From the sequence record OV032902.1: a stretch of DNA of 64,000 nucleotides, one strand, 5' to 3'. Every line of letters starts with the position of its first letter. Positions within the stretch are counted from its first letter, which is position 1. Below, piece by piece: positions 1 through 41,427 of the stretch. The notes below the pieces were generated by a model. It had not been told where the DNA came from. It worked only from the letters and a program-made list of their open reading frames with translations, and did no database searches. The position numbers were made by a program, and so were the translations under genes.

Positions 1-3000
1 GGTATCACCACCATGGAAAACATGTTCTATGGTGCAGTAGCGTTTAACCAGCCTCTAGCGGCTTGGGATGTTTCAAACGTAACTAACTTTGCTCAGATGT
101 TCCGTGATGCTTCTGTGTTTAATCAAGCGATTCCATGTTGGAACGTTGCTAATGCAACAGACATGACTCGTATGCTTAACAATGCAGTAGCGTTCGATCA
201 GAATCTAAGTGCATGGTGTGTGGGCAATAACATTGCTACAGAGCCAACTGACTTTGACTCTGGTTCTGGCATTGCAGGTGTACTAGCTAAAGCTCCTCAA
301 TGGGGTGTTGCATGTTCTCCTGTTGCTGGTCTGAATGGTACAGGCGTACTAGCACGTTGGGATGTTGTTACTAACGACAACCTTTGGGCTGACGTAGGTA
401 AGACTCTTCCTGTTGGTGTAAACGGTATCGTTGCAGTGATTGAAGATAGTTCAGGTAACGGTAACGATGCAATTGTTTCAGGTAATGTTCGTTGGAGAAA
501 CGACAGTTCCGGTAACGGTTACTTGGATTTCGAAAACGGTGCTCAGTTAACAGCAGCTGGAATCACAGATGCTTATGACATTGCATTCGTAGTACCTGGT
601 GTAGGTAACACTTACATCGAGCGTCCTGCTGATGCTGGCGGTGCACACTTCTGGGGACAATCAGCAACCGGTGTAGTAGGCAGTCTATTGATTACTTCAA
701 CTGGTAATGGTTCAACTGTAGGTGGCTTCCAATGTCTACCATACCAAGAGAAAGTTACAACGTCACTATCTCGTTACTTCCGCAATGAAGACCTATTTAA
801 CAATGACCTAAGTGCTTGGGACATGAATGGCATCACAGATGTTTCACACATGTTCGAAGGCGCTGACTTCTTTGAAAATGGTGGTCAACCATTAGCGTGG
901 GATACGTCGACTATTACTGACATGTCTTACTTGTTCCGTGACTGTATTGCATTCAATCAGGATATCACTGGTTGGGTAACATCAGCAGTTACAGATATGA
1001 GTTACATGTTTAATGAGGCAAATGCATTCAACCAAGATATTGGTGGTTGGGACGTGTCTGCGGTAACTGTGTTTACATCTATGCTGCAAGGTGCAACTGT
1101 GTTTAACCAAGACTTGTCTGGTTGGACTACAACGGCTGCAACTCGCATGGATAACATGTTCCGTGACGCAGTAGCGTTTAACTCTGATGTAAGTAACTTT
1201 GACATGAACGGCGTAACACGTGCTGATTACATGTTCTCTGGTTGTACGGTCTTTAACAATGCTGGTATCTCACTAGCTACTTGGGACGTAAGTACGATTC
1301 AGAACTTCTCAGGTATGTTTAATAGTGCTGAAGCATTCGACCAAGACATTACGACATGGACAACGACAAGCGCAACAGCAATGGCTAACATGTTTACCAA
1401 TGCTAAAGCGTTTAACCGTAACATCACAGGCTGGGATGTTGCTAATGTAACTAGCTTCTACAACATGTTCCGTGGAGCAACACTGTTTAACAATGGTGCG
1501 GCAAACGACGGTACTGAAGGTCCAGTGATGAACTGGGATGTTACAGGTGCAACTGATAACCAAGCGTTCCGTGGTATGTTCCAAGATGCGGTAGCGTTTA
1601 ACTGTGAAATGCCTAACTGGGTAATCATTGGTCTAGCAATGGACATGATGAATGGTTGTGCTAAGTTTAACCAAGATATCTCTTCTTGGGACTTAACGGC
1701 AACTACTTACCTGACTTCATTCTTGCGCAACTGTGCAGTGTTTGACAACAAGGGTGCAGCGTTAACTGTTAATGCTCCTCTATGTACTCACTTCAATACG
1801 TTCCTTGCTGGATGTTCAGTATTCAATCAAGACGTAACGATGGTGATGTCGTCAGCTACTAACACAGCTGGTATGTTCCAAGATACTTCGGTATTTAATG
1901 GCGCTATCAGTGGCTTCGATATGAGCGGCGTTACAAACGCAGCGTTGATGTTTAGCGGTGCAGCTAAGTTCAATCAGCCTATTGGTGATTGGGAAGTACA
2001 AAACATTCAGAACTTCTTAAGCTTCTTGAGTGGTGCGGCCGAGTTTAACCAAAAGCTGACATGTTGGGATGTAGGTTCTGCAACTAACATGAATAACATG
2101 TTCTCAGGAACTACAGCGTTTGATCAAGACATCTCTACATGGTGTACTCCAAGCATCACTGCTGAACCAACTGACTTTAAGACTGGTTCAGGTATCAGTG
2201 CAGCTAACGAGCCAAACTGGGCGACTATGGGCGGATGTACTCCAGGAGCAGGTTCAATTGCATCTGGCTCTACATTGGCTATTCTTGACCCGCGTGACAA
2301 GTCTAACTTGTTCCAAGACGTTGGTATGACTAACCCAGTAACAACAGCAGGTCAAACTGTATTAGCGGCTACTGATAGTTCAGGCAATGGCAATGACTTT
2401 GTCTTTGTGGACGGAACGGTAACATACCGTGAAGATACTAACGGCAACGGCATGCTAGAATATGGCCCAAGTGCTAAAGTGCGTGCTGTAGCGATTACGT
2501 CTACATATGACGTTGGCTTTATCGTACCTACTGTTGGTTACGGTTACATAGCTTCAACGGCAATTGCAGGCGGCGCTGAGTTTGGCGGTCGTTCGGGTAC
2601 ACAGCAAGTAGGTCCTATGATCTTTACTGCGAGTGGCTTTGGTAACACCGTTAGCGGAACAGAATGTATCAGTTATGCAAGCGTTAGTCCATTTGCACTA
2701 GAGAGCTTCTTCCGTAGTGAAAACAACCCTGTATTTGCAAGCAACTGGGATTTGACGAATATTACTTCTATTGATAGTATCTTCTTCTTCTCCGATGCAG
2801 CTAATGCAAGTGGCGTGGAAACATGGACTAATACGGGCAATCTAGTTAGTATGCGTTATGCCTTTAATGGCAATAGCAGCCTAAACCAAGACTTATCAAA
2901 CTTTGATACTTCTAATGTACAAGACTTCTTTAGTACGTTCTCTGGCTGTAGTGCGTTTACTGGTACTGGACTAAGCAGTTGGGATGTCGGTTCAGCATCA

Positions 3001-6000
3001 ACAATGGCTTCAATGTTTAACGGCTGCATTAACTTCAACGAAGATCTTTCTTTGTGGAATGTAATCAACTGTAACAACTTTGATAGTACGTTCTCTGGCT
3101 GTCGTGTATTTAACAACGGCGAAGCAGCAGGTTCAAGTACTAAGCCACTAGCATGGGACATCAATACTACTGCTTCTGGCGGTGTTGAGATGGAATCAAT
3201 GTTTAAGAACGCGTGGGTGTTTAACCAAGACATTACTACGTGGAATATGTCTAACGTTGATAACATGCTGAAGATGTTCCAAGACGCGCGCGCATTTAAC
3301 AATGGTAATGCGGCAGGTGTTTCTCATGCTGTAAACTGGGACACAACTCGTGCTGAAACCACAAGTTACATGTTTGACAGTGCTTGGGCATTTAATGGCG
3401 ATATCTCTTCATGGGATACTTCTAACATTGAAGACATGAGCTACATGTTCCAAGATGCACAGGCGTTTAACCAGAATGTTGACCACTTTGACTTTACGTC
3501 AATTATCCCTAATGCTGGTGTCATTCGTGTGTTTAAAGACGCAGTAGCATTTAACAATGGTGAAACTGCCCTAGCAACAACTGCACCTATTACTTGGACT
3601 AACTTACCTGCTGGTTCAAACCTAACTGGTTTGTTCGAGAATGCAGATTCGTTTAACCAAGACCTGGCAATTAACTGGGCTAACGTAACTTCAATTTACC
3701 GCATGTTCTACAATAACGGTGGATTCAACCGTGACGTAAACGGATGGGATGTATCTGGCATTACAAGTCTAGAAGGCGTGTTCTATAATGCTACGGCATT
3801 TAACAACGGGTCTGCTGGCGGCGTAACAGATAACCCTATCACTTGGGATACAAGTTCAGCTACTACAATGGAAGCATTGTTCCGTGGCGCTACGAGCTTT
3901 GACCAAGATGTGAGTGGATTTAACCTTGCTAATGTAACAACGTTACGTCGTATGTTCCGTGATGCTGATAACTTTAATCAGCCGGTTGGTTCATGGGATG
4001 TTTCAGGTGTATCGCGCTTCGATGAAATGTTTGAAGGCACAGACGCATTCAATCAATCTCTAGGTTGTTGGGATGTTTCAGGTGCTACAAACATGGATAG
4101 TATGTTTGAAGCTGCTTTAGGTTTCAATCAAAGTATCTCTGGATGGTGTACGCCAAACATTACGGTTCGTCCGACTTCGTTTGCCGATGCATCGCCAATT
4201 AATGGTACTGCGAATGAACCTGATTGGACTAACATGGGTTCTTGTACTCCAGGTGCGGCAACGCTTTCCTCTGGAAGTACTTTGGCACTATTCGACCCAC
4301 GAGACATGACGTCGCTTTACCAGGATACTGCAAGGACGATTCCTGTAACAGCACCTGGAGACAGCGTACGCGGTATTGCTGATTTGTCAGGAAATGGCAA
4401 CCATGGTGTCATTGATGGCACTGCTGCCCGCTATCGTGAAGATGTTGATGGTAAAGGATTCTTGGATTTATTTGCAGGGTCTTCAATCAAAGTCGCTACT
4501 GTTACAGTTGCATACGATGTAGGCTTTATTATCCCGGGTATCGGTAATGGCTGGGAAGGATTCCTGGCAGATGCTGCCGGTGCAGAATACTGGGGCAAGA
4601 ATGATGACTGCTGTCGTGGACCGTTGATATTCACAGGAAGTGGATTTGGCTCTTCAATGGGCGGCGCAGAATGTATCGCATATGCTCCTGGTACAGTCTC
4701 GTCACTAGACCGTACGTTCTCTAAGGCCGTTTCTTCTGGCGGTAACTTCGCAGATTGGAATACCACTGGTGTAACGCGCATGGAATACATGTTCGAAGAA
4801 CAGCGTACCTTCACGGGTACTGGAGTTGAGAACTGGGATGTAAGTGCAGTAACATCTTTCCAATATATGTTTGATGATTGTGATGTCTTTAATGCCGACC
4901 TTTCAGCATGGGATACGTCATCGGGTACATTGTTCCGTTATATGTTTAACAGAGCCCTCGCATTTAACAATGGCGGCGCTGGTAACGATAAGCCTATGAC
5001 GTTTGACACCTCTTCGGCTACAGATCTATCCGGTATGTTCTTCGGTAACGATGTGTTTAACCAAGATGTGGCAGCGTTCAATACGGCCAATGCAACTACC
5101 TTGGCATCCATGTTTAATGGTGCGAATGCGTTTAACCAAGATGTGAATCATTTCGACTTGACTAAATGTACAAACATAGCAAGTATTTTCCAAAATGCTA
5201 CGGTGTTTAATAATGGTTCTTCAGCAGGAGCTTCTGACAATCCGTTGTCTTGGAGTACGCCGGCACTGACCATTACTTCGCGTGCCTTTGCTAGTACTCA
5301 AGCATTTAACCAGGACTTAAGTTCTTGGACCATGGATAATGTCTGGTGGACAGAAGCCATGTTTAACAACGCCGATGCGTTTAACCAAAACTTGAATGCC
5401 TGGAACATGGAGAAGATGAGCAATGCTTATCTAATGTTCTGGAATGCCGATATCTTTAATAATGGCGGTGCTATAGGTGCTGGTGCCCCAGGTGGTGATG
5501 CTCCATTGACTTGGACTACAACTGCCTTGAGTAATGCTGAGAATATGTTCGCAAGTACAGGTGAGTTTAACCAACCAATGCCAAACTTCGCGTTTGCGGC
5601 AGGTTCGACAACACGCACGAGCAAGATGTTCCAGTCAGCACCGAAGTTTAACCAAGATATCTCTATGTGGGATATGTCTAATGTGACTCGTCTGAGCTAC
5701 ATGTTCCAGAAAGCAATAGCATTTAACAACGGCTCTGCTCCTGGGGTAACTGACAATCCATTAGTATGGGATACATCAAAAGTTATTACGCTTCAAGGCA
5801 CATTTGCTGGCGCTGAGTCATTCAACCAGGATATCGAATCTTGGGATACGTCCAGTGTTACTAATATGAATCAAACATTTAGCTATACTTCTTCTGGAGA
5901 AGAATCCATCTTTAACCGACCATTAAACAAATGGAACGTTTCAAGTGTGACTAACTTCGAAGAAACGTTTGCCCGTAACCGTGCGTTTAATCAGCCACTG

Positions 6001-7539
6001 GCTTGTTGGAACGTAAGTGCTGCTACAAACATGGCTCAAATGTTTGAATCTGCCGACGCAATGGATGGAGACTTAAGTGCATGGTGTACGCCAAACATCA
6101 CTGCCGAGCCTACCAACTTTGTATTTGCATCTAACCTAGATGGACAGACGGCTAAGCACCCTGACTGGGCTAACATGGCTTCTTGTACTCCTGGAGTACC
6201 TACGGCTAGCTGGCCTGATGCTGTAGCTATCTTTGATATGACTGATGTAACTACGTTGTATCAAGATGCAGGTATGACTACGCCGGTAACGGCAGCTGGT
6301 CAATCTGTTGCTAAGATCGAAGACTTGTCAGGTAACGGCAACCACATGACGTGTACAGACACAACAGCTAAGCAAGACGATAACGGTAACTGGTACATCT
6401 GTCGTTTAACTTCAGGTGACATGACCATACCTTCGGCTGCTGGTTCAGGTGACTTTGCATTCGCGATTAACCCGCCGTCTGTAGGTTGGATTACCGGTGC
6501 AACAAACTTCCATAGTGGAGATTGGGGCTTTACTGGTAGTTCGCGTCGTGACTTTGCACAAATCATGATTGGCCCATCTGGTACAGACAATACTATCACA
6601 GGCATTGACTGTGGCGATGGGAAGAGCTGGTCTTGGGCTTCGGCTGCTTCGTCTTCAGACCGCGTGTCGATTGGACGTATTGCCGAGTTTGCTAATGTAA
6701 ACAGTGACATCTCTAACTTGAACATGAGATGGGTATTCGATGCGGAGCGCGCATTTAGCCGTGTAACCTTTGCTAACCCTAACGTGGACTTGTCAGGATG
6801 GAACATGGCAGCGGTAGAGGACATGCAGTACATGTTCAATCAATCTAACTTCGCAGGTAGTGTGGAAAACTGGGATGCTTCTAGCTGTACTAGCTTTGAA
6901 GGCATGTTCTACTTCTGTGCGGACTTTAACGGCGATGTGAGTGGTTGGACAACAAACACTACTGGTTACAGTACCAAGCAAATGTTTGGCGGTTGTACCA
7001 ATTTCAACTCTGGTGCATCTGTAGCGATTACCGGTCCAGATCTTTCAAACTTGACGAGTGCGACTTCGAACTGTTACGACATGTTCCGAGACTGTACGTC
7101 ATTTAACTGTCAGATTCCAACTGTTAACATCATTGGCGATAGCCTGGATGCAGCATACATGTTCCGTGGTTGTTCATGGTTCCAGAATGGCGGCGTAGCG
7201 ATTACGATTAATGGTGACAATGCACGTTCATTGATTAGTTTCTTTGACGGCTGTACGTTGTTCAACCAGCCTGTGACTGTTACATTCCCTACCAACAATC
7301 TACAACGTTGTCAGAGAATGTTCTATGGTTGTCAAGCCATGAATAGTCCTGTAGTTCTACCGCAGTCTAATGCTACTACCATCGTACATACAGTGGGTAT
7401 GTTCCAAGAGGCGATTAACTTCGACCAAGATATGTCTTACTGGTGTGTATCGCATATAGCTTCTAAACCAACTAACTTTGCAACCAATGCTCCAATTGAT
7501 GGAACCGCTAAGGAACCACAATGGGGTGCTGCTTGTTAA
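1..7539 (+). CDS. Giant DUF285/BspA-like (surface-protein 26-residue-type) repeat protein with interspersed phage-fibre-like domains; 5'-truncated by the window edge; putative virion fibre/adhesin
   Basis: Dozens of W(D/N)VSxVTxMxxMFxxAxxFNQDLxx repeats. Bases 1-12 are in frame and stop-free (GITT) and the track start at 13 falls mid-repeat, so the gene begins upstream. Confidence 0.85.
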   Translation, partial: GITTMENMFYGAVAFNQPLAAWDVSNVTNFAQMFRDASVFNQAIPCWNVANATDMTRMLNNAVAFDQNLSAWCVGNNIATEPTDFDSGSGIAGVLAKAPQWGVACSPVAGLNGTGVLARWDVVTNDNLWADVGKTLPVGVNGIVAVIEDSSGNGNDAIVSGNVRWRNDSSGNGYLDFENGAQLTAAGITDAYDIAFVVPGVGNTYIERPADAGGAHFWGQSATGVVGSLLITSTGNGSTVGGFQCLPYQEKVTTSLSRYFRNEDLFNNDLSAWDMNGITDVSHMFEGADFFENGGQPLAWDTSTITDMSYLFRDCIAFNQDITGWVTSAVTDMSYMFNEANAFNQDIGGWDVSAVTVFTSMLQGATVFNQDLSGWTTTAATRMDNMFRDAVAFNSDVSNFDMNGVTRADYMFSGCTVFNNAGISLATWDVSTIQNFSGMFNSAEAFDQDITTWTTTSATAMANMFTNAKAFNRNITGWDVANVTSFYNMFRGATLFNNGAANDGTEGPVMNWDVTGATDNQAFRGMFQDAVAFNCEMPNWVIIGLAMDMMNGCAKFNQDISSWDLTATTYLTSFLRNCAVFDNKGAALTVNAPLCTHFNTFLAGCSVFNQDVTMVMSSATNTAGMFQDTSVFNGAISGFDMSGVTNAALMFSGAAKFNQPIGDWEVQNIQNFLSFLSGAAEFNQKLTCWDVGSATNMNNMFSGTTAFDQDISTWCTPSITAEPTDFKTGSGISAANEPNWATMGGCTPGAGSIASGSTLAILDPRDKSNLFQDVGMTNPVTTAGQTVLAATDSSGNGNDFVFVDGTVTYREDTNGNGMLEYGPSAKVRAVAITSTYDVGFIVPTVGYGYIASTAIAGGAEFGGRSGTQQVGPMIFTASGFGNTVSGTECISYASVSPFALESFFRSENNPVFASNWDLTNITSIDSIFFFSDAANASGVETWTNTGNLVSMRYAFNGNSSLNQDLSNFDTSNVQDFFSTFSGCSAFTGTGLSSWDVGSASTMASMFNGCINFNEDLSLWNVINCNNFDSTFSGCRVFNNGEAAGSSTKPLAWDINTTASGGVEMESMFKNAWVFNQDITTWNMSNVDNMLKMFQDARAFNNGNAAGVSHAVNWDTTRAETTSYMFDSAWAFNGDISSWDTSNIEDMSYMFQDAQAFNQNVDHFDFTSIIPNAGVIRVFKDAVAFNNGETALATTAPITWTNLPAGSNLTGLFENADSFNQDLAINWANVTSIYRMFYNNGGFNRDVNGWDVSGITSLEGVFYNATAFNNGSAGGVTDNPITWDTSSATTMEALFRGATSFDQDVSGFNLANVTTLRRMFRDADNFNQPVGSWDVSGVSRFDEMFEGTDAFNQSLGCWDVSGATNMDSMFEAALGFNQSISGWCTPNITVRPTSFADASPINGTANEPDWTNMGSCTPGAATLSSGSTLALFDPRDMTSLYQDTARTIPVTAPGDSVRGIADLSGNGNHGVIDGTAARYREDVDGKGFLDLFAGSSIKVATVTVAYDVGFIIPGIGNGWEGFLADAAGAEYWGKNDDCCRGPLIFTGSGFGSSMGGAECIAYAPGTVSSLDRTFSKAVSSGGNFADWNTTGVTRMEYMFEEQRTFTGTGVENWDVSAVTSFQYMFDDCDVFNADLSAWDTSSGTLFRYMFNRALAFNNGGAGNDKPMTFDTSSATDLSGMFFGNDVFNQDVAAFNTANATTLASMFNGANAFNQDVNHFDLTKCTNIASIFQNATVFNNGSSAGASDNPLSWSTPALTITSRAFASTQAFNQDLSSWTMDNVWWTEAMFNNADAFNQNLNAWNMEKMSNAYLMFWNADIFNNGGAIGAGAPGGDAPLTWTTTALSNAENMFASTGEFNQPMPNFAFAAGSTTRTSKMFQSAPKFNQDISMWDMSNVTRLSYMFQKAIAFNNGSAPGVTDNPLVWDTSKVITLQGTFAGAESFNQDIESWDTSSVTNMNQTFSYTSSGEESIFNRPLNKWNVSSVTNFEETFARNRAFNQPLACWNVSAATNMAQMFESADAMDGDLSAWCTPNITAEPTNFVFASNLDGQTAKHPDWANMASCTPGVPTASWPDAVAIFDMTDVTTLYQDAGMTTPVTAAGQSVAKIEDLSGNGNHMTCTDTTAKQDDNGNWYICRLTSGDMTIPSAAGSGDFAFAINPPSVGWITGATNFHSGDWGFTGSSRRDFAQIMIGPSGTDNTITGIDCGDGKSWSWASAASSSDRVSIGRIAEFANVNSDISNLNMRWVFDAERAFSRVTFANPNVDLSGWNMAAVEDMQYMFNQSNFAGSVENWDASSCTSFEGMFYFCADFNGDVSGWTTNTTGYSTKQMFGGCTNFNSGASVAITGPDLSNLTSATSNCYDMFRDCTSFNCQIPTVNIIGDSLDAAYMFRGCSWFQNGGVAITINGDNARSLISFFDGCTLFNQPVTVTFPTNNLQRCQRMFYGCQAMNSPVVLPQSNATTIVHTVGMFQEAINFDQDMSYWCVSHIASKPTNFATNAPIDGTAKEPQWGAAC

Positions 7540-7553: not shown

Positions 7554-7585
7554 GAGGGAGTCTTCGGACTCCCTCATCTTTTTTC
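7554..7585 (+). terminator. Intrinsic terminator
   Basis: GAGGGAGTC-TTCG-GACTCCCTC followed by a T-rich tract, right after the stop at 7539. Confidence 0.9.
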
Positions 7586-7645: not shown

Positions 7646-9253
7646 ATGAAAGAAAATTTTGTAATCCACTTGATCAATGCAAGTGATTCGACCCCAACGG
7701 GTTGGGTACTTATTACTAACGAAGAATACTTTAATGGAGAGGAGTTGCAACCGTTCTCTATTATGGCTTCTTACGAGAAGAGTGTTTTAGTAAACTTCGA
7801 AGGTAAGATTTACAAGTCATTGTTTGCTATGGGCCCTGGAGACTTCAATGAGTCGGCATGGGTTCGTGTAGATCGAGCTTATTCAGAAATTCCAAAGGTT
7901 GATTCGACTCTGTCGTATCCTGAAGACGCTTTGGTATTAGATATTCTAGGGAATCTTAAGTACAGTATTTTCGCGGTAGCTCCGGGTGATACTTCTACTT
8001 GGGAAGACCCAACTACTGGTCTCGAAGTTGCTTCGGCATTTGCCTACTTCGAAGACGAACTAGAAACTAAGTCTCGCTTAGTATCTGGTAAAATGGTTAA
8101 GCTAGCTTCAGCTGATGATACAGCATTGCCTGATTTCGTTGGCGAGTTAGAAGACCCAGAAGAAGCTTATAAGGGCGACCTTACTGAAAAGGTTGTTGCT
8201 TATTATGATGCAAGTCAAATCGCTACGCTGAGCACTACGCTTGCTCCTGGTAATGTTCCAGCAGAAGATGAGCGAGTAGCTTTTGTTCGTGATATCTCAG
8301 GTAATGGTAACCACGCTATTCAGATGGATGTACGTAAGCGTCCAGTTCTTAAGCGTGATGCCAATGGTCGTTTCTTCCTGCGATTCAATCCAGGTAACTA
8401 CATGGAAACCAAGTTCCCGCATACTGGCGAAGTAAGTCAGTTTGTAAACTTTGCGGCAGCTGGTGTTCCTCGTTTCGTTGATACTTACGACGGCAAGATT
8501 CGTCTAGGTATGAAGTCAGAAGCAGATGAGCGTTACTGGGCATGGGGCGGTGAAGCTATTGTTGAAGCAGAACAAGACATTCTTATTCGTGATGAGATTC
8601 GTGCTAAGGTTGTCACGGACAAAGATTCGTATGCTCCTCGTACGCAGTTCTCTGGCTTTAACTTGTTCCGTGATGAAACCACTCTAGTTGACCACATGTC
8701 AGACTTCGACACTACTGGCATGAAAGCATTACCTGGCTTCCTAGAAGGCTGTCTAAACTTCAACGATGATATCTCAGGTTGGGATGTTACAGAGAGTACA
8801 GACTTCCGACGCTTCTTTAAGAACTGTCCATTGTTTGACGGTGAAATCTCTAACTGGGATACTACCAAGGCTACTCGTATGGATGAGATGTTCCAGGGTG
8901 CTACGGCATTCAACTCTGACATCTCTAGCTGGACAGTCGACAACGTAACCAGCTTCTACTGTATGTTCCGTTTTGCTGAGTCTTTTGATCAGCCGCTTAA
9001 TACATGGAATACAGGACTTGCTGAAAGTATGTCATTTATGTTTGAAGGCGCATTAGCTTTCAATCAACCCCTTTCTAACTGGGACCTTTCTTCTTGTCAG
9101 TTCTTGATGGCATTCCTTCGTGGAGCAACATCATTCGAACAAGATCTAAGTACCTGGTGTGTTTCTCATATTGCTATTCGTCCTACTGACTTTATGGACG
9201 AAGACGAAGTCAACGGCGACGCATTCGAACCTCGCTGGGGCGAAGCTTGTTAA
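7646..9253 (+). CDS. DUF285-repeat protein, 535 aa: N-terminal anchor module + fibre-like domain + repeats + Cys cap
   Basis: Repeats in the C-terminal third, DISGNGNH domain, ends WCVSHI..PTDF..EPRWGEAC; N-terminus resembles the ~200-aa cassette adaptors. Confidence 0.8.
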   Translation: MKENFVIHLINASDSTPTGWVLITNEEYFNGEELQPFSIMASYEKSVLVNFEGKIYKSLFAMGPGDFNESAWVRVDRAYSEIPKVDSTLSYPEDALVLDILGNLKYSIFAVAPGDTSTWEDPTTGLEVASAFAYFEDELETKSRLVSGKMVKLASADDTALPDFVGELEDPEEAYKGDLTEKVVAYYDASQIATLSTTLAPGNVPAEDERVAFVRDISGNGNHAIQMDVRKRPVLKRDANGRFFLRFNPGNYMETKFPHTGEVSQFVNFAAAGVPRFVDTYDGKIRLGMKSEADERYWAWGGEAIVEAEQDILIRDEIRAKVVTDKDSYAPRTQFSGFNLFRDETTLVDHMSDFDTTGMKALPGFLEGCLNFNDDISGWDVTESTDFRRFFKNCPLFDGEISNWDTTKATRMDEMFQGATAFNSDISSWTVDNVTSFYCMFRFAESFDQPLNTWNTGLAESMSFMFEGALAFNQPLSNWDLSSCQFLMAFLRGATSFEQDLSTWCVSHIAIRPTDFMDEDEVNGDAFEPRWGEAC

Positions 9254-9264: not shown

Positions 9265-12200
9265 ATGTCTACTTTTGTACGTTTATTTAAATATGACGGC
9301 GATGGTGACGTAGAACTTAACTACGGCATCATTCCTACTTCTATTAACGCTGACCCAGAACGAGTAATCAGTCGCTACAGTCCAACTACGGATTATCCGG
9401 CTAACTCTTTTATTGTTCGTGATGGCGATGTGTACCATTCTCCTCATGGTTCTGCACCTGGTCCGTTTAACTCGGCAGAGTGGAATAACGTTGAAGGTTT
9501 ATTTGCGTTAGTTCAAACGTTTGATACTGATGCTGCTTATGATGCAGATAGTGTTATGCTTCATCCTCGCGATGATGCTCCGTATTATGCTGAGGCAGCA
9601 ACAGGCCCAGGCTCTCTAGATGGCGATGCATGGGTTCCGTTTACTGAAACTGATGCAGCTGTAACCCTTCACTGTTATCTCGACCCAGATAGCGATACAG
9701 AGCTTCCTACGGTCATCGCAGGTAAGTGCGTAGAGATCAAAGACATCTCTCTTCAAGAATCAGACTACCTGGATTACTTTGCTGGTTTCTATGATGCAAC
9801 AAACTCGTCAGAAATGGCAGTGAATGCAGACGGTACAGGCACAGTAACTAATGGCTCTATTGTTCGCTGGATTCGTGACTTGACTGGTAAAGGCAATCAC
9901 GGTATCCAAACAGACGATACGCTATGTCCTCGTTTCGTAGCCAAGCCAGGCGGCGGTGGTTATCTTCGATTTGACCCAGGCGGTCACTTTAAAGTTCCTA
10001 CGATTACAACACCTACTGACCATTGGTTATCATGTGCTGGTCGTGGTGAAGCTGTCTTCCTTGGTATCGATAACGACCGTGATGAATCTAATCCTGGTGC
10101 TACTCTAGGTATGAAGAACCACACTGATACCAAAGCATGGATCTGGAGTGGTGAAGCTATCGCAACTGAGCGTGTCATCCAAGAACACGAAGATTATGTT
10201 CTAGAAGACTTGAAAGAACTAACCGCTAAAGCTGAAGGCGATGTCTCTCCGCTAGGTGGCTGTTTTGAAAACGAGTCTCGTTTGTATCGTGTTATCCCTG
10301 GATTCAATACGCTTGGTCAGACAATGGCACAGACGTTCAAGAACTGTACTATCTTTACTGGTGGTGTTTCTGGATGGGATGTTCGCTTTATTACAAGTCT
10401 TATCGAAACGTTCTATGGTTGTGCAAACTTTAACGAGTCAATCGGTAACTGGCAAACTAATAACTTGCAGCTATTGACGTCTACATTCCAAGGTGCTTTC
10501 AAGTTTAACCAAGACTTATCGGCATGGGATGTATCTAAGGTGCGTACGTTTGATTACTGTTTTGCAGATACCACTGCTTACAATAATGGCGGTGTTAATC
10601 TACTTAACTGGACAACTCCAGCAGCAGAATCAATGACGGGCATGTTCCTTAATGCGCAATCCTTTAATCAAGAGCTTGGTTACTGGGATACGTCAAGCGT
10701 TACGTCTATGGAAAGTATGTTTGATGGCGCAGAAACATTTAACCAAGACATTGGTTCTTGGGATGTTTCCTTAGTTGCTAACATGGACCGTATGTTTTAC
10801 GGTACGACTGATTTCAATCAAGACATCTCTTGGTGGTGTGCGGATTCTATTCCTACCGAACCAACTGACTTTGATACGGATTCTGGTTTTGTAGACCAAG
10901 CCGCATTACAGCCTAACTGGGGCGGTTGTTTACCTACGGGCTTCATTGCCATCTATGAATACGATGATCCTGCTACAATGGGTGCAGCAACAACTGGCGT
11001 TGGTGGTGTTACTGATGGCACTAAAGTCGCATACGTTACGGACATTACTGGTAATGACAATCACGCTATCCAAGCAGACCCATTACTTCAGCCTACGTTC
11101 CGTGAAGTTGCAGATGGCAAAGGTTACTTAGAGTTTACTAATGACCAACATCTAGTTTGTGCGGCTATCACTAATCCAACTCACTGCGCATCTGCTCATG
11201 AAGGTCGTGGTACTGTACGTCACGCTACAATGGACAATACTGCTGGCATGAAAGTCGGCATTAACTTTGCAGCAGCGGATAAGAAATGGGAACTGGCTTC
11301 TCAGTCTTTTGCTGAAACAACTGTACTTCAAGATGATTGGGATTTCGAATTCGATCGCCGTGGAGCAGTGGCTAAGCAGAATGCTATTCCTGCTGGCTCT
11401 CAAGTTAAGTCTATGTTTGAAGACGAACAATACGTCACTGATGGCGTAGCTGCACTGACACTTCCTGACCTAACTGACATGACAGCTATGATGAAAGGCT
11501 GTTTCCGTTGGAATGAAGATATTGATGCATGGGATGTATCGTCTTGTACTGATATGACTTCTGCCTTTGAAGGCTGTGTAGCGTTTAATGGTACTTGTTC
11601 TTCTTGGAATGTGTCTTCTGTTGTGTCGTTTAACTCTATGTTTAAAACAGCAGCGCTATTCAATCAGGACATCACGAGTTGGGTTACGTCTTCTGCAACT
11701 GACATGTCTGGCATGTTTATGTTTGCTGGTAGCTTCACTCAAGATCTATCTGGTTGGAACACAGAGTTCGTTACTGACATGTCTCAGATGTTTGAGCGTT
11801 CATCAGTTAACTTCGACTTGTCTGCTTTAGATACAGCTGCGGTAGTTAACTTCAATCGAATGTTTGCTGACTCGAACTTCTTTAACCAAGACATCAACGC
11901 CGTAGATTTCTCTGCTGCTGAAGACATGGGTGGAATGTTCTACGGTGCAAAAGCATTTAACAACGGTGGTCAGGCCCTAGCTATTAATGCTCCTGTTGCT
12001 ACAACACTTAATCAGTTCCTGAGCTTCAGTGATGTTTTCAATCAAGACATTTCTGCTATGAATCTGCCTGCTGTAGAAACACTAGGTGGCTTCCTGTCTG
12101 GCGCTCAGTCGTTTAACAACATCATTGCTGGTTTTAGTGCTCCTGTTGCCACAGATGTGAATTCGTTCTTTGCTTATGCTCCTGGTTTTAACCAAGACAT

Positions 12201-12762
12201 TTCTGAGATGGTTCTACCTAACGTTACTGGCGTAAGTGCATTTGTACGTGGTTGTCCACTATATGACAATGGCGGCATGGCGGTTACGCATGACCCTGCT
12301 AAGTTTAACTTTGCTAATGTGGTTTCGTTAGATAACTTCTTTGAAGATTGTCCAGTATTCAATCAAGACGTAAGCACTATGGCTGCGGGTACACTTACTC
12401 GTACTAATGCTACGTTTAAGAATTGTGCTGCCTTCAATCAAGATGTATCTAGCTGGAACATGTCTAATGTTATTATTACGGAAGATATGTTTTCTGGTTG
12501 TACGAACTTTGATGGCGATCTAACTCTATGGTCTCTTGACTCACTAGAGAATGCTAACTACATGTTCTTGGATGCTGTGTCATTCACAGGTACAGGTGTT
12601 GGCGGTTGGTCGTTTGGTGCACTAATTACGGCAGAAGAAATGTTCCGTGGATGTACAGTAGTGGGTGACGTGTTTAGCGCATGGGACTTTACTGGTGTTA
12701 GTTCTACGGATGCATTTACAGATGCTCCATTAGTCGTTAGCTTCCCTATCGGTTACGTTTAA
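9265..12762 (+). CDS. DUF285-repeat protein, 1165 aa, two modules
   Basis: GGAG RBS before ATG 9265 (the track start at 9247 is upstream of the RBS); two DLTGKGNH/DITGNDNH domains each followed by repeats. Confidence 0.8.
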   Translation: MSTFVRLFKYDGDGDVELNYGIIPTSINADPERVISRYSPTTDYPANSFIVRDGDVYHSPHGSAPGPFNSAEWNNVEGLFALVQTFDTDAAYDADSVMLHPRDDAPYYAEAATGPGSLDGDAWVPFTETDAAVTLHCYLDPDSDTELPTVIAGKCVEIKDISLQESDYLDYFAGFYDATNSSEMAVNADGTGTVTNGSIVRWIRDLTGKGNHGIQTDDTLCPRFVAKPGGGGYLRFDPGGHFKVPTITTPTDHWLSCAGRGEAVFLGIDNDRDESNPGATLGMKNHTDTKAWIWSGEAIATERVIQEHEDYVLEDLKELTAKAEGDVSPLGGCFENESRLYRVIPGFNTLGQTMAQTFKNCTIFTGGVSGWDVRFITSLIETFYGCANFNESIGNWQTNNLQLLTSTFQGAFKFNQDLSAWDVSKVRTFDYCFADTTAYNNGGVNLLNWTTPAAESMTGMFLNAQSFNQELGYWDTSSVTSMESMFDGAETFNQDIGSWDVSLVANMDRMFYGTTDFNQDISWWCADSIPTEPTDFDTDSGFVDQAALQPNWGGCLPTGFIAIYEYDDPATMGAATTGVGGVTDGTKVAYVTDITGNDNHAIQADPLLQPTFREVADGKGYLEFTNDQHLVCAAITNPTHCASAHEGRGTVRHATMDNTAGMKVGINFAAADKKWELASQSFAETTVLQDDWDFEFDRRGAVAKQNAIPAGSQVKSMFEDEQYVTDGVAALTLPDLTDMTAMMKGCFRWNEDIDAWDVSSCTDMTSAFEGCVAFNGTCSSWNVSSVVSFNSMFKTAALFNQDITSWVTSSATDMSGMFMFAGSFTQDLSGWNTEFVTDMSQMFERSSVNFDLSALDTAAVVNFNRMFADSNFFNQDINAVDFSAAEDMGGMFYGAKAFNNGGQALAINAPVATTLNQFLSFSDVFNQDISAMNLPAVETLGGFLSGAQSFNNIIAGFSAPVATDVNSFFAYAPGFNQDISEMVLPNVTGVSAFVRGCPLYDNGGMAVTHDPAKFNFANVVSLDNFFEDCPVFNQDVSTMAAGTLTRTNATFKNCAAFNQDVSSWNMSNVIITEDMFSGCTNFDGDLTLWSLDSLENANYMFLDAVSFTGTGVGGWSFGALITAEEMFRGCTVVGDVFSAWDFTGVSSTDAFTDAPLVVSFPIGYV

Positions 12763-12770: not shown

Positions 12771-12805
12771 CAACCCGTCCCGAAAGGGGCGGGTTGATTG
12801 TTTTT
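12771..12805 (+). terminator. Intrinsic terminator
   Basis: CAACCCGTCCC-GAAA-GGGGCGGGTTG followed by a T tract. Confidence 0.85.
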
Positions 12806-31090: not shown

Positions 31091-31657
31091 TTATAGGTTG
31101 TCGTGGATAACAAGACCATCATGGATAATCATGTCGTCGTAGAACTCAATAAGTTCACCGGCTTCAATCCAGTCACCATAAAAGAAAACACCTTCAGGAA
31201 TCTCAAGCGTTCTATCTCTCAATTCTTCCAGTTTATAAAGTGTAAGTGTCTTAAGCTCATCACCTGAGTTAATCAACATCCACTCGTCGCTTACCCAATC
31301 AACAGACACGCCAGGAGTCCGACGACAATACAGGTTTCCATTGCGGTATACAATGTCTTCCATTCGATAGAGTCGAAATGGCTTGAACGGATTAATATAA
31401 CCTTTCCGTACCTCGATAGGGTGAGCACTTTGTCTCGCTCCTTTCTTGTACCAGGCTTCTCGTTCACCGAGGTAGATAACGCCTCCGCCGCCCTCTGGTT
31501 CTGTCGTGTCAACGATGTTACCGTCTGAGGGGATAGACTCGTAGATTTTGGTCTTTTTGAATTTATCATAGAAGTGATGACTCGTTACGTAGATATTAAT
31601 CGGAGTAAACTCTTGGCCATTCATGACGTAGAGTTTGGTTACATACGCCTTTTCCAT
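31091..31657 (-). CDS. Cassette A gene 7: adaptor/anchor protein (~190 aa), putative virion protein
   Basis: AGTAGGTG RBS before ATG 31657; paralog of 38309..38953 and 48295..48915. Confidence 0.75.
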   Translation of the reverse strand: MEKAYVTKLYVMNGQEFTPINIYVTSHHFYDKFKKTKIYESIPSDGNIVDTTEPEGGGGVIYLGEREAWYKKGARQSAHPIEVRKGYINPFKPFRLYRMEDIVYRNGNLYCRRTPGVSVDWVSDEWMLINSGDELKTLTLYKLEELRDRTLEIPEGVFFYGDWIEAGELIEFYDDMIIHDGLVIHDNL

Positions 31658-31663
31658 GGACAC

Positions 31664-32143
31664 CTACTTAGGGATAGTTCCCAGTAATTCAAAATTAGCA
31701 ATAGCAAACGGAGTGTTAGCGGTAAGCATTACTTTGGTACGCAATAGCTTAATCTCATTCACACCGTCTGCGATAACTACGACACCGATAGGATATTCTT
31801 TTGCTGTGTTGTAAACACCATAAAAGAAACCCTCGTTTTCTTTCGTTGCCCAAAACAAACGCCAGTAGTTATGATCAAACAAAGGTTTGGTCTCACCCTG
31901 AGGAATATCTTTAACGCAACGGAAATAGCCAATTGACGAACGGATTTCATCACCAAAGACATAAGCCTTGCCTTCTTCCATAGACGCATAAGTATTCACG
32001 TCTGGATTGATAGGTGGCTGTTCATACGGGTCAGCATCTGCATTAGTAAATGACACGATGTCATTAATAGTGCGAACGATTTCTTGACCTGTACTATTCA
32101 ATGGGTCAGAAGCAGTAGGCTTAGAAACAATTGGATTCGTCAT
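31664..32143 (-). CDS. Cassette A gene 6: short paralog of the N-terminus of the 500-aa protein
   Basis: STGQEIVRTIN helix motif + GYFRCVKD..NYW.LFW; paralog of 38956..39450. Confidence 0.75.
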   Translation of the reverse strand: MTNPIVSKPTASDPLNSTGQEIVRTINDIVSFTNADADPYEQPPINPDVNTYASMEEGKAYVFGDEIRSSIGYFRCVKDIPQGETKPLFDHNYWRLFWATKENEGFFYGVYNTAKEYPIGVVVIADGVNEIKLLRTKVMLTANTPFAIANFELLGTIPK

Positions 32144-32760
32144 TCTATTTTACCTTCTAGCTCTACGCTGTAACAATACATGAAGCGACGCGAGGTACGC
32201 TTCGGACGGATAACAGACACTGCGGACTGTCTGTATAGCTTACTGTATGGAAGTTCTTTAACAACCGTAACAGCAGCTTGACGATATAGGCTCGCACTAT
32301 CTTTGATGCGGATTACAGAAGTTGCAGTCACGCGATACATGTGAGATGGGTCACGTTGTCGCACAACAGTTACAGCGGCTTGTCTGTATAACTTAGCAGC
32401 TCCCTTAATCTTAATTACCGACACTGCGGACTGTCGATATAGATTAGCGGGTTCTGGCATCTTCATAATGTAATCAACAGACATCGAAGTAAGGTTCGGG
32501 CCTGGATTCGGTTTCAGGATATAATCAATAGAAGCACCCGTCACATTAGGTCCCGGATTAGGAGCCATGATGTAATCAATAGATGCACCATATGTTTGCA
32601 CAGACTGTTGATCTGTATAAACTACTGATATTTCCTGTGCCTTGATATTAGGACCAGTGGCAGGCCCAAGAACTAACGAGAGCTCCTGAGCCTTAATGTT
32701 CGGACCATCTGAAGGACCTAAGACCAAAGACATCTCATGTGCATTGATCTTAGTACTCAT
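32140..32760 (-). CDS. Cassette A gene 5: 11-repeat beta-strand 'scaffold' protein
   Basis: ~17-aa repeats in three classes: 3x (K/N)I(N/K)A(H/Q)E.S.V, 3x (GA/SM)S.DYI, 5x LYRQ.AV.V. Confidence 0.75.
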   Translation of the reverse strand: MSTKINAHEMSLVLGPSDGPNIKAQELSLVLGPATGPNIKAQEISVVYTDQQSVQTYGASIDYIMAPNPGPNVTGASIDYILKPNPGPNLTSMSVDYIMKMPEPANLYRQSAVSVIKIKGAAKLYRQAAVTVVRQRDPSHMYRVTATSVIRIKDSASLYRQAAVTVVKELPYSKLYRQSAVSVIRPKRTSRRFMYCYSVELEGKIE

Positions 32761-34061
32761 TTCCAGGTCTCATACCAAAGCAGAACTTTCTGCGGTTGTG
32801 CTTTAATCTTATCAAAGAAAGCTTTCAAGCTAGAGCTTCCTGACGAACGCATATAGAAAGAACCACCTGACTGAGTGAATACATCACTATAAGTCATGCC
32901 GTCCTCTGTGCCCAGATAGACACGCATGTAAGTATGCACTGCACCATCTGGATCTTCTACAACGTTATTGCCAAGGTTCTTGATGTAACCCCCGCCAGTA
33001 GAGTTAATTTGAAACTCTTTCCAGCCAAAGCCACGCCAAGCACTATTGCCTGAAATCTTGTCAGCGTTATTATCGAAACCAACACCGGCACCAAAGTTAC
33101 CCATGTTAAACAAAGACGCATCAAAGTCAGCTTTTAAACCAAACGACAAACCAGCTACGTCACTAACACTCCATGGCTGTCCTGTCAATGGATTCGTCTC
33201 AGAAACCGTAAGGATAGGACCAGGGGTCAAATCAACGTGTGCGTATAGCGGCCACTTAAGTTCTTCTGTGTCAGTACCATCAGTAACGACAGGAGAGAGC
33301 CTAGGAGCGTCTGTATCAGCCGTTGCGGTAATAACATTAGACATTACAACGGCCTTAATGCTAAGGTCGCCTACAACGCCATTCAGAGGGTCTGTGTGTT
33401 TGAATGTCTGTATAGCAGGAACAGAAGTATTAAAACCTTCTTTAGTAACTGCCGTACCTTGAACGTTAGCTAAGTCACCATCCATCTCCGAGATATCGCC
33501 TAGAGCATCTGGAGCAGATGTAGCCAGACGGAAACCACGAGTGTCACTGTCAGCAACAATGATCTCACCAACATGACAACTGGTTGCACGGAACACACTG
33601 ATATGTGTAGTACCAAAACCAATAACGTTCTTTGCCCATGTAGTTACTTCATTGCCGTCCGCATAAATCGTGATGCCTTGTTCGTTAACATGGAAATCAA
33701 ACGTTCTCATCGAAGAGTTACTGAAAGTATGTGTCTCACGAACATAATTCAATGCATCGCAATACTCTACTTTCATTTTGGCATTACTTACCGAAACTTG
33801 GATGTAACCTTTCGAGCCACTTGAATCATTAAAGTAAAACTTAACGTAGCGAGAAGAAACACTACCGCCAGAAGCAATGGCATGAAGCCAGTATTCTTTC
33901 TCGCCATTCAAATCAATAGTTCGAGTAGAGCTATCGGGAATAGATGATACATCGCCAAAGGAAGCATGCGTACATGGAATCATCGTGGTGCGACCATCTG
34001 AACCATCAATGGCTGCATTGCCTCGAACAGTACTTGCATTAAGTACATTGATAATAGCCAT
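32757..34061 (-). CDS. Cassette A gene 4: ~434-aa putative adhesin/receptor-binding paralog
   Basis: GEIIVADSDTRGFRL...NPLTGQPW core shared by six paralogs. Confidence 0.65.
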   Translation of the reverse strand: MAIINVLNASTVRGNAAIDGSDGRTTMIPCTHASFGDVSSIPDSSTRTIDLNGEKEYWLHAIASGGSVSSRYVKFYFNDSSGSKGYIQVSVSNAKMKVEYCDALNYVRETHTFSNSSMRTFDFHVNEQGITIYADGNEVTTWAKNVIGFGTTHISVFRATSCHVGEIIVADSDTRGFRLATSAPDALGDISEMDGDLANVQGTAVTKEGFNTSVPAIQTFKHTDPLNGVVGDLSIKAVVMSNVITATADTDAPRLSPVVTDGTDTEELKWPLYAHVDLTPGPILTVSETNPLTGQPWSVSDVAGLSFGLKADFDASLFNMGNFGAGVGFDNNADKISGNSAWRGFGWKEFQINSTGGGYIKNLGNNVVEDPDGAVHTYMRVYLGTEDGMTYSDVFTQSGGSFYMRSSGSSSLKAFFDKIKAQPQKVLLWYETWK

Positions 34062-35347
34062 TATAAAGCCTCCACAAATAGACGAACTTTACCGCCAACG
34101 TTATTCTTAAAGATGTTATTGAAAGCAGCAACTTCCGTACCACGGTATCGTGAAACATCCCAAGAAAGAGTATTAGAAGCAACAGTTCCATCAGGTGCAA
34201 CTGCATGAATACGGATTTGATTGGCTCCGTCCCATTTGCCGTTATTCGCAGCACTAAAATAGAACATGTTGGTGTTGTACACCATTGCCAGTGTAATGGC
34301 AGACCCGCTAGGGAAAGTACCTTCAGCTGAACCATTGCCCGTATCCATTCCGTAATACAGGCCACTCTGGGCTACTGTTACAGATACGTCAGACGCTACG
34401 TTCTGGAAACCAAACTGCATTGACTCTGCATCAGCTTTAAGCCATTGTTCGCCAGTATGAGGATTGACGTTAAAGACCTTGGCTGAACCATTAGCGTACT
34501 GCTGTAATAGCTCGAAGGAACCAATGTCGTGATTTGTACCATCAGAAACAATTGGCTTCATGAACGGATTGGCTGCGTCTGCTTTAGCAAAGGAAGTATG
34601 ATTAAAAACCATAGCTTCTGGAACCATACCTGCCACTGAAGAATCAATGCCTTCAAAGGTAAATGTCTGTTGGCTATCAACACCGCCAGTAGACATAAAG
34701 TCATTCGTCAATCGATCAGTATTGATATCACTGACTTCACCAGCCCATTCAGACAATGCGCCTTTAGCTGCTACCTTACCTTCACTTAAACGCATGCCGC
34801 GAGTATCTTTAGTAGAGATAATGATCTCCCCGATACCTGTACTCGTAGCGCCCGTTTCCCACTCGTAGCTAAACGCAGCGATTTGAGTACCGGTATTGAT
34901 GTTCATAGCTAGATCTGGTTTAGCAGTACCGTCTACATAACCATAGACTCTGCCTGTCGTACCATCAATAAACAAATCGATGTCTTTATAGCCTGCGGAA
35001 CCTAGATGCCAGCTAGAGGAGCTTGAGCTAGGTGAGCTGAATGAACCGTGTCCCATCCAAAAGAATGGATACTTGCCGCCGCCCGTATTGTAAAACTCGA
35101 ACTTAACCTTTTCATCACTGTAGGCACGACTAAAGTGCCAGCGGAAATGAACCCAAAAGGAATTCGATGTTTCTGCAAAGTCATGACGGAATTGAGTAAT
35201 GCGCTCGCCCTTAGGAATACGACGAGTAAGAATATTACTGTCCGCAGCAATAGCTCCTTGGCGAGGGTCTACAGAAGAACCAGCCATATTGGAGTTATTG
35301 TTAAGAATACGCATACTGTCCAGATTACCAGTTGCTAGAATAGCCAT
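34061..35347 (-). CDS. Cassette A gene 3: ~428-aa putative adhesin paralog
   Basis: GEIIISTKDTRGMRL...NPHTGEQW core. Confidence 0.65.
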   Translation of the reverse strand: MAILATGNLDSMRILNNNSNMAGSSVDPRQGAIAADSNILTRRIPKGERITQFRHDFAETSNSFWVHFRWHFSRAYSDEKVKFEFYNTGGGKYPFFWMGHGSFSSPSSSSSSWHLGSAGYKDIDLFIDGTTGRVYGYVDGTAKPDLAMNINTGTQIAAFSYEWETGATSTGIGEIIISTKDTRGMRLSEGKVAAKGALSEWAGEVSDINTDRLTNDFMSTGGVDSQQTFTFEGIDSSVAGMVPEAMVFNHTSFAKADAANPFMKPIVSDGTNHDIGSFELLQQYANGSAKVFNVNPHTGEQWLKADAESMQFGFQNVASDVSVTVAQSGLYYGMDTGNGSAEGTFPSGSAITLAMVYNTNMFYFSAANNGKWDGANQIRIHAVAPDGTVASNTLSWDVSRYRGTEVAAFNNIFKNNVGGKVRLFVEAL

Positions 35348-35350
35348 GTC

Positions 35351-38208: not shown

Positions 38209-38239
38209 GGATAAAATTTCCATTCTAATTAAAAGAAAC

Positions 38240-38257
38240 GGTCTTCGGGTGACCATA
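38240..38257 (-). promoter_or_regulatory. Putative late promoter (TATG) with +1 hairpin, cassette A
   Basis: Minus strand TTAATTA-TATG, then G(+1)GTC-ACCCGAA-GACC. Confidence 0.55.
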
Positions 38258-38258
38258 T

Positions 38259-38301
38259 AATTAAACCGAAAAAATAAACCTCCTGACCCGAAGGCCAGGA
38301 G
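38259..38301 (-). terminator. Intrinsic terminator ending cassette B
   Basis: Minus strand CTCCTGGCC-TTCG-GGTCAGGAG followed by GTTTATTTTTT. Confidence 0.85.
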
Positions 38302-38308
38302 AATTTAG

Positions 38309-38953
38309 TTAGTCTTCATCAGGACTTGTACTACCATCATCTCGGAAAAGACGCAAGTTATCATGGAGTATCATCTCATCCCAAAAGGATGTGGTATCCG
38401 TGATAATCTCAGGCTTCTCTTCTTCGACGGTATCTGGATCGAACGGTTCTTCTGCGTACTCCAATCGGTCGCCGTAAAAGAACACGCCGTATTTCATTTC
38501 GAAAGGTTCTGTTTCAAAGTCAATAGAATCGTAAACAGTCAATGCTGGTATCTGGTGGCCAGACTCTACTTCTACCCATTCTTCAGGACGCCAAATTCCT
38601 TTACCTGCATCTAAGCGAGAAAAGATTTTGCCGCCATAAGAGATAACGTCAAACTTGTCGTAATGCTCTTCTGGATTAAAGTAAGAGATGAAACCTTGGT
38701 GTACTGTGATAGGAAGAAGCTTACGGTTATTCTTACCGGTGTAAAAAGCCTTGTCTTCTTCCAACAGGATAACGCCCGTATCCTTTTCGTCAATAACACT
38801 ATCGACAAGATACTGGACGTCACCATTGATTTCATATACTGCATCCTTTACAAAGCGTTCGTAAAACGTACGACTTGTAAGGTAAACGTTCAGTGGAACT
38901 TCTAGACTTTGGTCAATCGTGAATAGTCGAACGATAAAACTTCTGTCTAGCAT
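38309..38953 (-). CDS. Cassette B gene 7: adaptor/anchor protein, 214 aa
   Basis: Paralog of 31091..31657 (F.V.L..., GF(I)..F.P...Y...D.I.Y.G...W). Confidence 0.75.
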   Translation of the reverse strand: MLDRSFIVRLFTIDQSLEVPLNVYLTSRTFYERFVKDAVYEINGDVQYLVDSVIDEKDTGVILLEEDKAFYTGKNNRKLLPITVHQGFISYFNPEEHYDKFDVISYGGKIFSRLDAGKGIWRPEEWVEVESGHQIPALTVYDSIDFETEPFEMKYGVFFYGDRLEYAEEPFDPDTVEEEKPEIITDTTSFWDEMILHDNLRLFRDDGSTSPDED

Positions 38954-38955
38954 AA

Positions 38956-39450: not shown

Positions 39451-39459
39451 ACATTCTCC

Positions 39460-40083: not shown

Positions 40084-40093
40084 GGTCTACTCC

Positions 40094-41416: not shown

Positions 41417-41427
41417 GGTCTAACTCC

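Follow-up and report, generated by a model that had tools for sequence, protein, structure and literature searches.

The closest described counterpart of the gene reported here is the 19,254-bp ORF200 of Vibrio phage vB_VhaM_pir03 (pir03), for which a PARCEL/DUF285 match was reported as 'not described in phages up to date', without an architecture or a function (Pathogens 2020, PMC7765460). DUF285/PARCEL repeats (PF03382 in Pfam, TIGR02167 in NCBIfam), about 25 amino acids (aa) in length, belong to surface proteins such as the lipoproteins of Mycoplasma and Listeria, where they build solenoids of the leucine-rich-repeat (LRR) type. Viral DUF285 solenoids that end in the same cap as the protein reported here (phrog_35701) are found in other jumbo phages and in giant viruses, namely in OBP_145, in gp156 of Aeromonas phage D6 and in D3, in Klebsiella phage N1M2 and in the BspA-like proteins of the Aureococcus virus AaV; these proteins consist of one large non-repeat body (phrog_17273, of unknown function) with the solenoid at the C-terminal end. 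Here we analysed a window of 64,000 nucleotides (nt), positions 1-64000 of sequence record OV032902.1, which was assigned by megablast to the Vibrio jumbo phage vB_VpaM_sm033 (sm033; record of 320,253 bp, deposited as linear) and for which a literature search found no paper naming the phage. The window opens inside a gene encoding a protein of 7,406 aa, hereafter the giant gene and the giant protein, and, unlike the viral proteins with one large non-repeat body, this product contains a second domain with a D.SGNGN motif and is built as a 13-fold repeat of a supermodule.

Extent and modular architecture of the giant gene

Frame 1 of the window is open from its first base to nt 7539 (2,512 codons). 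The record carries no forward-strand annotation of a coding sequence (CDS) from position 305,434 to its end, yet a single open frame of 4,936 codons runs through this region and off the end. The first 127 nt of the record are an exact duplicate of its last 127 nt, and such a terminal duplication is typically left by a circular assembly path; OV032902.1 is thus a circular assembly that was linearised inside the giant gene. Once one copy of the overlap is removed, window 1-7539 continues the upstream frame in phase, giving an open reading frame (ORF) of 22,221 nt and 7,406 codons with its sole stop at the end. The true start, which a first-pass annotation made from the letters of the window had sought upstream, is located at record position 305445, the upstream part around the record ends contributing 4,894 further codons, and the 807-kDa product has an isoelectric point of 4.1. 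The join rests on both the 127-nt overlap and homology, as supermodule 9, which crosses the record junction, pairs with the ninth supermodule of pir03 (P9) in a single 650-residue high-scoring segment pair and thereby confirms the junction independently. The GenBank record therefore conceals two thirds of the giant gene, its linearisation point lying inside the gene and 13.7 kb being unannotated, in contrast to pir03, and comparisons of gene content and host range among Vibrio phages that are candidates for aquaculture therapy can be misled as a result.

The giant protein begins with an N-terminal domain of ~175 aa, after which come 13 supermodules, each 409-668 aa long; every supermodule runs from a beta-rich D.SGNGN domain of ~150 aa through 7-19 DUF285/PARCEL repeats to a two-cysteine cap. 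A hidden Markov model (HMM) built from the four copies in the window and iterated on the full protein placed cap-plus-domain units at residues 604, 1131, 1614, 2023, 2628, 3189, 3690, 4336, 4961, 5603, 6271 and 6917; the first D.SGNGN domain (~residue 175) has no preceding cap, and the terminal cap lies at residue 7370. Fifteen units, those of the paralogs described below included, align end to end, with 25-40% protein identity among paralogous copies. The part of the giant gene that lies in the window is composed as follows.

Window 1..7539, plus strand: 3' third of the giant ORF, residues 4895-7406 (open frame, in-phase join)
Window 1..127, strand not applicable: identical to the final 127 nt of the record, to be counted once (sequence identity)
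Window 199..318, plus strand: cap closing supermodule 9, W-C at nt 214 (cap motif)
Window 319..2244, plus strand: supermodule 10, with D.SGNGN domain at ~nt 319-770, ~17 DUF285 repeats and cap W-C at nt 2140 (HMM, alignment)
Window 2245..4248, plus strand: supermodule 11, with D.SGNGN domain at ~nt 2245-2700, ~18 DUF285 repeats and cap W-C at nt 4144 (HMM, alignment, AlphaFold2 model)
Window 4249..6186, plus strand: supermodule 12, with D.SGNGN domain, ~14 DUF285 repeats and cap W-C at nt 6082 (HMM, alignment)
Window 6187..7536, plus strand: supermodule 13, terminal, 450 aa, with ~7 recognisable Cys-rich repeats and final cap W-C at nt 7441 (HMM, alignment)

The W-C motifs of the caps start at nt 214, 2140, 4144, 6082 and 7441 (residues 4966, 5608, 6276, 6922 and 7375 of the full-length protein), and each of the first four precedes a D.SGNGN(D/H) domain and then DUF285 repeats. 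The four window units of 642, 668, 646 and 450 aa align over their whole length with 29-41% identity, the last, supermodule 13, being the shortest of them and the most divergent module. A DUF285 ORF with caps at these places had been proposed in the first-pass annotation and is borne out by the 2,512 open codons, the Pfam score of 1126 bits and the five caps between nt 214 and 7441, as is the higher-order nature of the repeat. The supermodule of ~650 aa in at least four copies that it described is real (450-670 aa), but its extent was understated, the protein having 13 units and not four. The caps share the consensus W-C-V..I...PT.F...P.WG..C, and both cysteines are retained in 11 of the 13. 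Cap 7 lacks both, cap 5 has the variant W-D...P-C-x-S-D-C, and pir03 shows the same two exceptions at the corresponding caps; this covariation of the cysteines would fit a cap closed by a disulphide. On the minus strand within the giant gene, ORFs of 127-179 aa were noted at window 2856-3302, 4431-4814 and 6300-6839, most likely as by-products of the biased repeat composition, and they show no sign of being genes.

Pfam DUF285 matched the window part at 1126 bits (cut-off 25) in 21 stretches and the upstream parts at 1142 and 1508 bits, TIGR02167 matched the repeats at 52 bits against a cut-off of 30, and at least 179 repeats were recognised in the whole protein. Structure models were built from window-only alignments (5 and 7 rows). 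The AlphaFold model of SM033_00002, a short paralog, contains a confident solenoid with a predicted local distance difference test (pLDDT) score of 80-90, which was superposed by VIA-align on LRR proteins of bacteria, plants and animals with Z 12-13 and a root-mean-square deviation of 2.9-3.8 over 176-190 residues. The AlphaFold2 model of supermodule 11 (mean pLDDT 74.8) is likewise confident in the solenoid and partly below 50 in the beta domain; Foldseek returned LRR proteins alone among its weak matches, and the nearest BFVD models were the pir03 giant protein and viral 'BspA/26-residue repeat' proteins. In these models, the DUF285 repeats are shown to form an LRR-type solenoid. In contrast to the founding bacterial members of the family, whose lipoprotein signal or membrane anchor is a trait of theirs and not of all members, the N-terminus of the giant protein, MSLLPTIIRLYHHQGTQD, has a mean hydropathy of 0.06 with no lipobox and no signal peptide, and no convincing membrane segment was found, the best 19-residue window (1.69) lying inside a beta domain. 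The giant protein also differs from them in that its repeats are arranged in 13 capped solenoids alternating with a second domain, and in its phage host. A simple inverted-repeat scan at seed 11 found no inverted repeats in the giant gene (the dyad symmetry of Roske et al. being degenerate), and the longest word common to the gene and its own reverse complement is 14 nt.

The D.SGNGN domain has the conserved head YD..LFQD.GT.PVT..G..V..D.SGNGNH..YRED.NG.GYL.F in the giant protein. A profile of the seven copies in the window retrieved 4,795 relatives (E ≤ 1e-3) among 1.84 billion representative proteins, many of which are 240-290 aa long and carry the head 'WYDPSD.STLFQD.AGTTPVTA.GQ.V..I.DKSGNGNHA.Q..RPT...D..G.YL.FDG.DD', and small proteins with this head are encoded in P22-like phage contigs. 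When 27 giant-type domains were compared with 60 of the small phage-contig proteins in hhalign, a probability of 99.8% and an E of 5e-29 were obtained, over the first ~74 columns only. Pfam Laminin_G_3 (PF13385) matched 13 of these 60 proteins (best E 6.6e-7), and no second family recurred. A further protein, P0025, carries seven heads and seven Laminin_G_3 stretches (E 2e-44), and, where coordinates are available, the head (687-751) stands directly before the Laminin_G_3 match (757-881). Because the hhalign comparison, the Laminin_G_3 matches and P0025 link the two, the D.SGNGN domain can be described as a putative LamG/ConA-like head with a shorter, diverged remainder, and at the level of sequence profiles the conserved head is shown to be the head segment of LamG/ConA-like modules. 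The suggestion in the first-pass annotation that the recurring non-repeat domain has phage relatives is thereby upheld. Phage and bacterial LamG-like modules with an N-terminal 'D.SGNGNH' head are similar to the giant protein in this homologous head and in their tandem arrays, as in P0025; they differ in that the giant protein conserves only the ~75-aa head, its remaining ~80 aa being shorter than the canonical LamG sandwich and unmatched by Pfam. Two copies of the domain gave no Pfam family even at E ≤ 10, no family was found for it in PHROGs or NCBIfam, and neither PDB sequence profiles nor the ESM Atlas returned a meaningful or usable match. Its models are beta-rich, with pLDDT below 50 across most of the domain, and were weakly matched in BFVD to 'LamG-like jellyroll' proteins (E 2.6e-4, template-modelling score ~0.25).

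Orthologs and evolution of the array

Gene order is shared between pir03 and sm033, with the helicase and EPTP-protein genes before the giant gene and UvdE and DHFR after it. ORF200 of pir03 (QNI21147.1, 'putative PARCEL protein') has the same supermodule design and the same N-terminal domain, with 51% identity between the two phages, and the giant gene is, on synteny and architecture, an ortholog of this gene already noticed in pir03. The pir03 protein is shorter, with 11 supermodules in 6,417 aa against 13 in 7,406 aa; a third ortholog, the Logan protein P0006 (6,272 aa), has 11 modules at similar positions. The pir03 unit boundaries at residues 602, 1129, 1612, 2022, 2626 and 3189 lie no more than 2 residues from those of sm033, the later ones diverging, and modules 1-9 are almost equal in length, modules 2-6 differing by 0-2 aa. 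In an all-against-all comparison of the sm033 (S) and pir03 (P) modules, the pairs S1-P1 to S9-P9 were reciprocal best matches with 39-57% identity, against 28-37% for paralogs, whereas S10-S13 and P10-P11 had no one-to-one partners. As this identity is comparable with the 38-64% found between core proteins of the two phages, the proximal nine modules appear to evolve like ordinary conserved genes, and the part of the giant protein encoded in the window is, on this comparison, the variable distal end of a conserved protein. A metagenomic contig has the order giant gene, 00002-like gene, 00003-like gene and UvdE, and the terminal module of the metagenomic ortholog is closest to supermodule 12 (42%), with no S13.

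DUF285 solenoids, a common feature of jumbo phages, were found in 89 of 50,697 phage records, among which the whole supermodule occurs in pir03 and Vibrio phage C-ZP2022 only. In C-ZP2022 (locus L036:2985-22146), the annotation divides the ortholog into two overlapping CDS (18,414 nt and 765 nt), probably because of a sequencing error or a frameshift close to the 3' end and not because there are two genes. No relatives of the locus were confirmed in IMG/VR, and a word-based protein search with SM033_00002 returned three homologs only.

Exact direct repeats in the 22 kb do not exceed 24 nt, and blastn of the sequence against itself gave no more than four short matches. Collapse or expansion of repeats in the assembly was considered and rejected, given that the DNA repeat families reach only 60-80% identity, over stretches of 72 nt or less, and recent horizontal acquisition was rejected on the GC content, which in the part of the giant ORF in the window is that of the rest of the window and of the genome. 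The first-pass annotation proposed that a bacterial surface solenoid had been spliced with a phage fibre domain; a recent splice of this kind is not supported, given the same GC content, the 25-40% identity among paralogous units, which marks the unit as old, and its module-by-module conservation in pir03. That annotation also suggested that two recurrent codon strings might favour changes in length through recombination. In the ORF part, TTTAACCAAGAY is present 7 times and GCATTTAACAA 5 times, neither being found in the remaining 51 kb of the window, and both represent codons for F-N-Q-D and A-F-N-N at the conserved core of the repeat; with 24 nt as the longest exact direct repeat, they give only microhomology, and length variation by recombination on a short time scale is therefore unsupported. 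New here are the true extent of the gene, its 13-unit architecture, the positional orthology of modules 1-9 together with the distal variability, and the paralogs sharing one N-terminal domain.

Paralogs and neighbouring genes

Two genes downstream of the giant gene encode shorter proteins with the same N-terminal domain, and terminator-like hairpins follow the giant ORF and this gene pair.

Window 7554..7575, plus strand: terminator-like GC hairpin and T run, just 3' of the giant ORF (hairpin scan)
Window 7646..9253, plus strand: SM033_00002, 535 aa, with shared N-terminal domain, one supermodule and cap (Pfam, hhalign, LRR fold)
Window 9265..12762, plus strand: SM033_00003, 1,165 aa, with shared N-terminal domain and two supermodules (Pfam, hhalign)
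Window 12771..12796, plus strand: strong terminator-like hairpin at the end of the 00002-00003 pair (hairpin scan)

The N-terminal domain of the giant protein (125-aa shared part) was related by hhalign to that of SM033_00002 with a probability of 98% (E 1e-13) and to that of SM033_00003 with a probability of 95%. In hhalign, this domain showed no relation to SM033_00299, which is annotated as a tail fibre, nor to 00300 or 00301, and homology to these proteins was rejected. By eye, its motif 'Y..G..V...G.IY......G.F....W..V' resembles the chitin-binding hairpins of CBM5/12, which Pfam did not confirm. A further open frame of 849 aa at record 75688-77682, outside the window, contains DUF285 repeats and a weak D.SGNGN-type segment and is, on these features, a fourth family member in the sm033 genome.

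The gene upstream of the giant gene (record 303772-305433) encodes an EPTP protein of 553 aa (Pfam EPTP, E 5e-5), which is conserved in pir03 and named 'EAR-like protein' there, and which shows weak similarity to the shared N-terminal domain over its first 50-75 residues. Between this gene and the start codon of the giant gene are 11 nt that include a GGAG-type ribosome-binding site, and the EPTP gene is itself preceded by a terminator-like hairpin; the giant gene thus appears to be co-transcribed with the EPTP gene in a unit bounded by terminators.

Several other large or fibre-like genes were observed. Record 281883-296994 encodes a 2,351-aa 'tail fiber protein' (weak phrog_9851 match) and a 2,282-aa protein without a family match, and these two ~2,300-aa genes together with the DUF285 genes put ~16% of the genome into a few giant, probably surface-exposed proteins. 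SM033_00302 (557 aa, record 297091-298764) has a sub-threshold match to the chitinase-like family Glyco_hydro_18 (E 1.3e-6, 28.7 bits against a cut-off of 29.6), which is of interest in a phage of chitin-associated Vibrio; the DUF285 protein of D6 is annotated as 'putative chitinase'. On the minus strand at window 31091-48298, two tandem cassettes, preceded by an 854-aa ORF without a family match, each contain small genes, a ~515-aa protein with a weak tail-fibre PHROG match (phrog_7049 or phrog_9851) and three phrog_6368 paralogs (430-450 aa, function unknown), which together look like a duplicated fibre or adaptor module.

Possible function of the giant protein

The best reading of the giant protein is a virion-anchored, multivalent adhesin fibre, to which we would give about an even chance, its location on the virion being the part that we infer. 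Among the functions considered in the first-pass annotation, a long segmented adhesin seems the most reasonable, and nothing was found in favour of host mimicry or decoy binding. The shared N-terminal domain would dock the giant protein, SM033_00002 and SM033_00003 onto the virion, from which the giant chain may extend as a flexible and probably non-trimeric beads-on-a-string filament of ~100-150 nm, a length that we estimated from general LRR geometry with at least 179 repeats at ~0.48 nm and 13 small domains. The many LRR concave faces and lectin-like domains could then give weak, multivalent attachment to glycans and proteins on the host surface or on particles, with specificity set by the exchangeable distal modules.

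Several features would be expected of an attachment organelle that is anchored by its N-terminus: one N-terminal domain is shared by proteins of 1, 2 and 13 units; the proximal part is conserved and the distal part exchangeable; two domain types that normally bind ligands are present; the caps are cysteine-paired; and no export signal is found. The genomic context is compatible with this reading, as a gene annotated as tail fibre and two further genes of ~2,300 aa are situated 9-24 kb upstream of the giant gene. The DUF285 proteins of OBP and Aeromonas phage D6 are encoded in the tail/baseplate cluster, between virion structural genes and a baseplate gene, and the DUF285 proteins AaV_052 and AaV_382 were detected by mass spectrometry in Aureococcus virus particles (PMC7507832).

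A number of observations weigh against a virion-anchored adhesin. The giant gene of sm033 is flanked by genes of DNA metabolism (helicase, DprA, UvdE and DHFR) and does not lie in the main structural block. No PHROG of known tail-fibre function was matched, only PHROGs 17273, 22899, 3649 and 35701 of unknown function, and the N-terminal domain belongs to no Pfam, PHROG or NCBIfam family. LRR solenoids usually occur as monomers, unlike classical fibres, which are trimeric beta-structures. The LamG assignment is transitive, as the giant protein's own D.SGNGN domains are unmatched by Pfam and their AlphaFold models have pLDDT below 50 there. OBP_145 is annotated as 'hypothetical protein' only, next to a neighbour called 'virion structural protein', which may mean that it went undetected in the OBP particle. 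Neither a virion proteome nor fibres on the particle are described in the papers on pir03 and BONAISHI. No DUF285 match was obtained in BONAISHI, which among published phages is the closest to pir03, so that the giant gene is dispensable for the virion design.

Some of these points count in favour of a role away from the virion, in the infected cell or after lysis, for example as a decoy, as a coat of debris or biofilm, or as a block to superinfection, the mimicry idea included: the flanking genes are non-structural, known fibre families are not matched, OBP_145 has no structural label, and DUF285 proteins are otherwise proteins of the cell surface. We nevertheless regard such a role as unlikely. 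With no signal peptide or membrane anchor, a chain of 807 kDa would reach the outside only by lysis, and 7,406 residues per copy would be a very costly investment in a diffusible decoy; moreover, three genes with a common N-terminal domain and a conserved proximal but variable distal part follow a pattern that is typical of attachment organelles.

Alternatively, the giant protein may be virion-associated as a decoration or scaffold, such as a whisker of the head or tail sheath, a net or a spacer, whose length is its function and which has no binding specificity. This would account for modules 2-6 keeping their lengths within 0-2 residues at only 44-57% sequence identity, and for paralogs of 1, 2 and 13 units on one anchor domain. 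However, module number (13 against 11) and the kind of distal module change from lineage to lineage, a variation that a pure ruler should not allow, and LRR and LamG-like domains are typically binding modules, making this explanation rather improbable. Readings of the array as a PARCEL tract under selfish expansion, or as an artefact of assembly, without selected function are largely refuted and very improbable: although PARCEL elements have been described as horizontally mobile and prone to expansion (Roske et al. 2010, PMC2996958) and the gene is absent from BONAISHI, a stop-free 22-kb frame has been kept in at least four lineages, its modules are positional orthologs of conserved length that diverge no faster than core genes, the DNA repeats, of which the longest exact one is 24 nt, are too diverged for assembly collapse or expansion, and the GC content matches the genome.

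Returning to the virion-anchored adhesin, a more specific and more tentative proposal, which we consider possible and would not call probable, is that the three proteins represent a new kind of attachment organelle, made of single-chain, non-trimeric filaments in which LRR solenoids alternate with lectin-like domains and 1, 2 or 13 units are carried on one anchor. Few parts of jumbo-phage genomes are as poorly understood as their very large repeat genes, and in sm033 the giant gene takes up ~7% of the genome, or more than 8% with its two paralogs. The conserved colinear array of 13 units of a binding type, with its stable proximal and exchangeable distal parts, together with short paralogs on a common anchor, makes the question testable. 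If the proposal of a new kind of attachment organelle is true, the giant protein, at 807 kDa, would be among the largest structural proteins of any cultured phage, and host or substrate range would be tuned by swaps of whole distal supermodules and not by point mutation of a tip domain.

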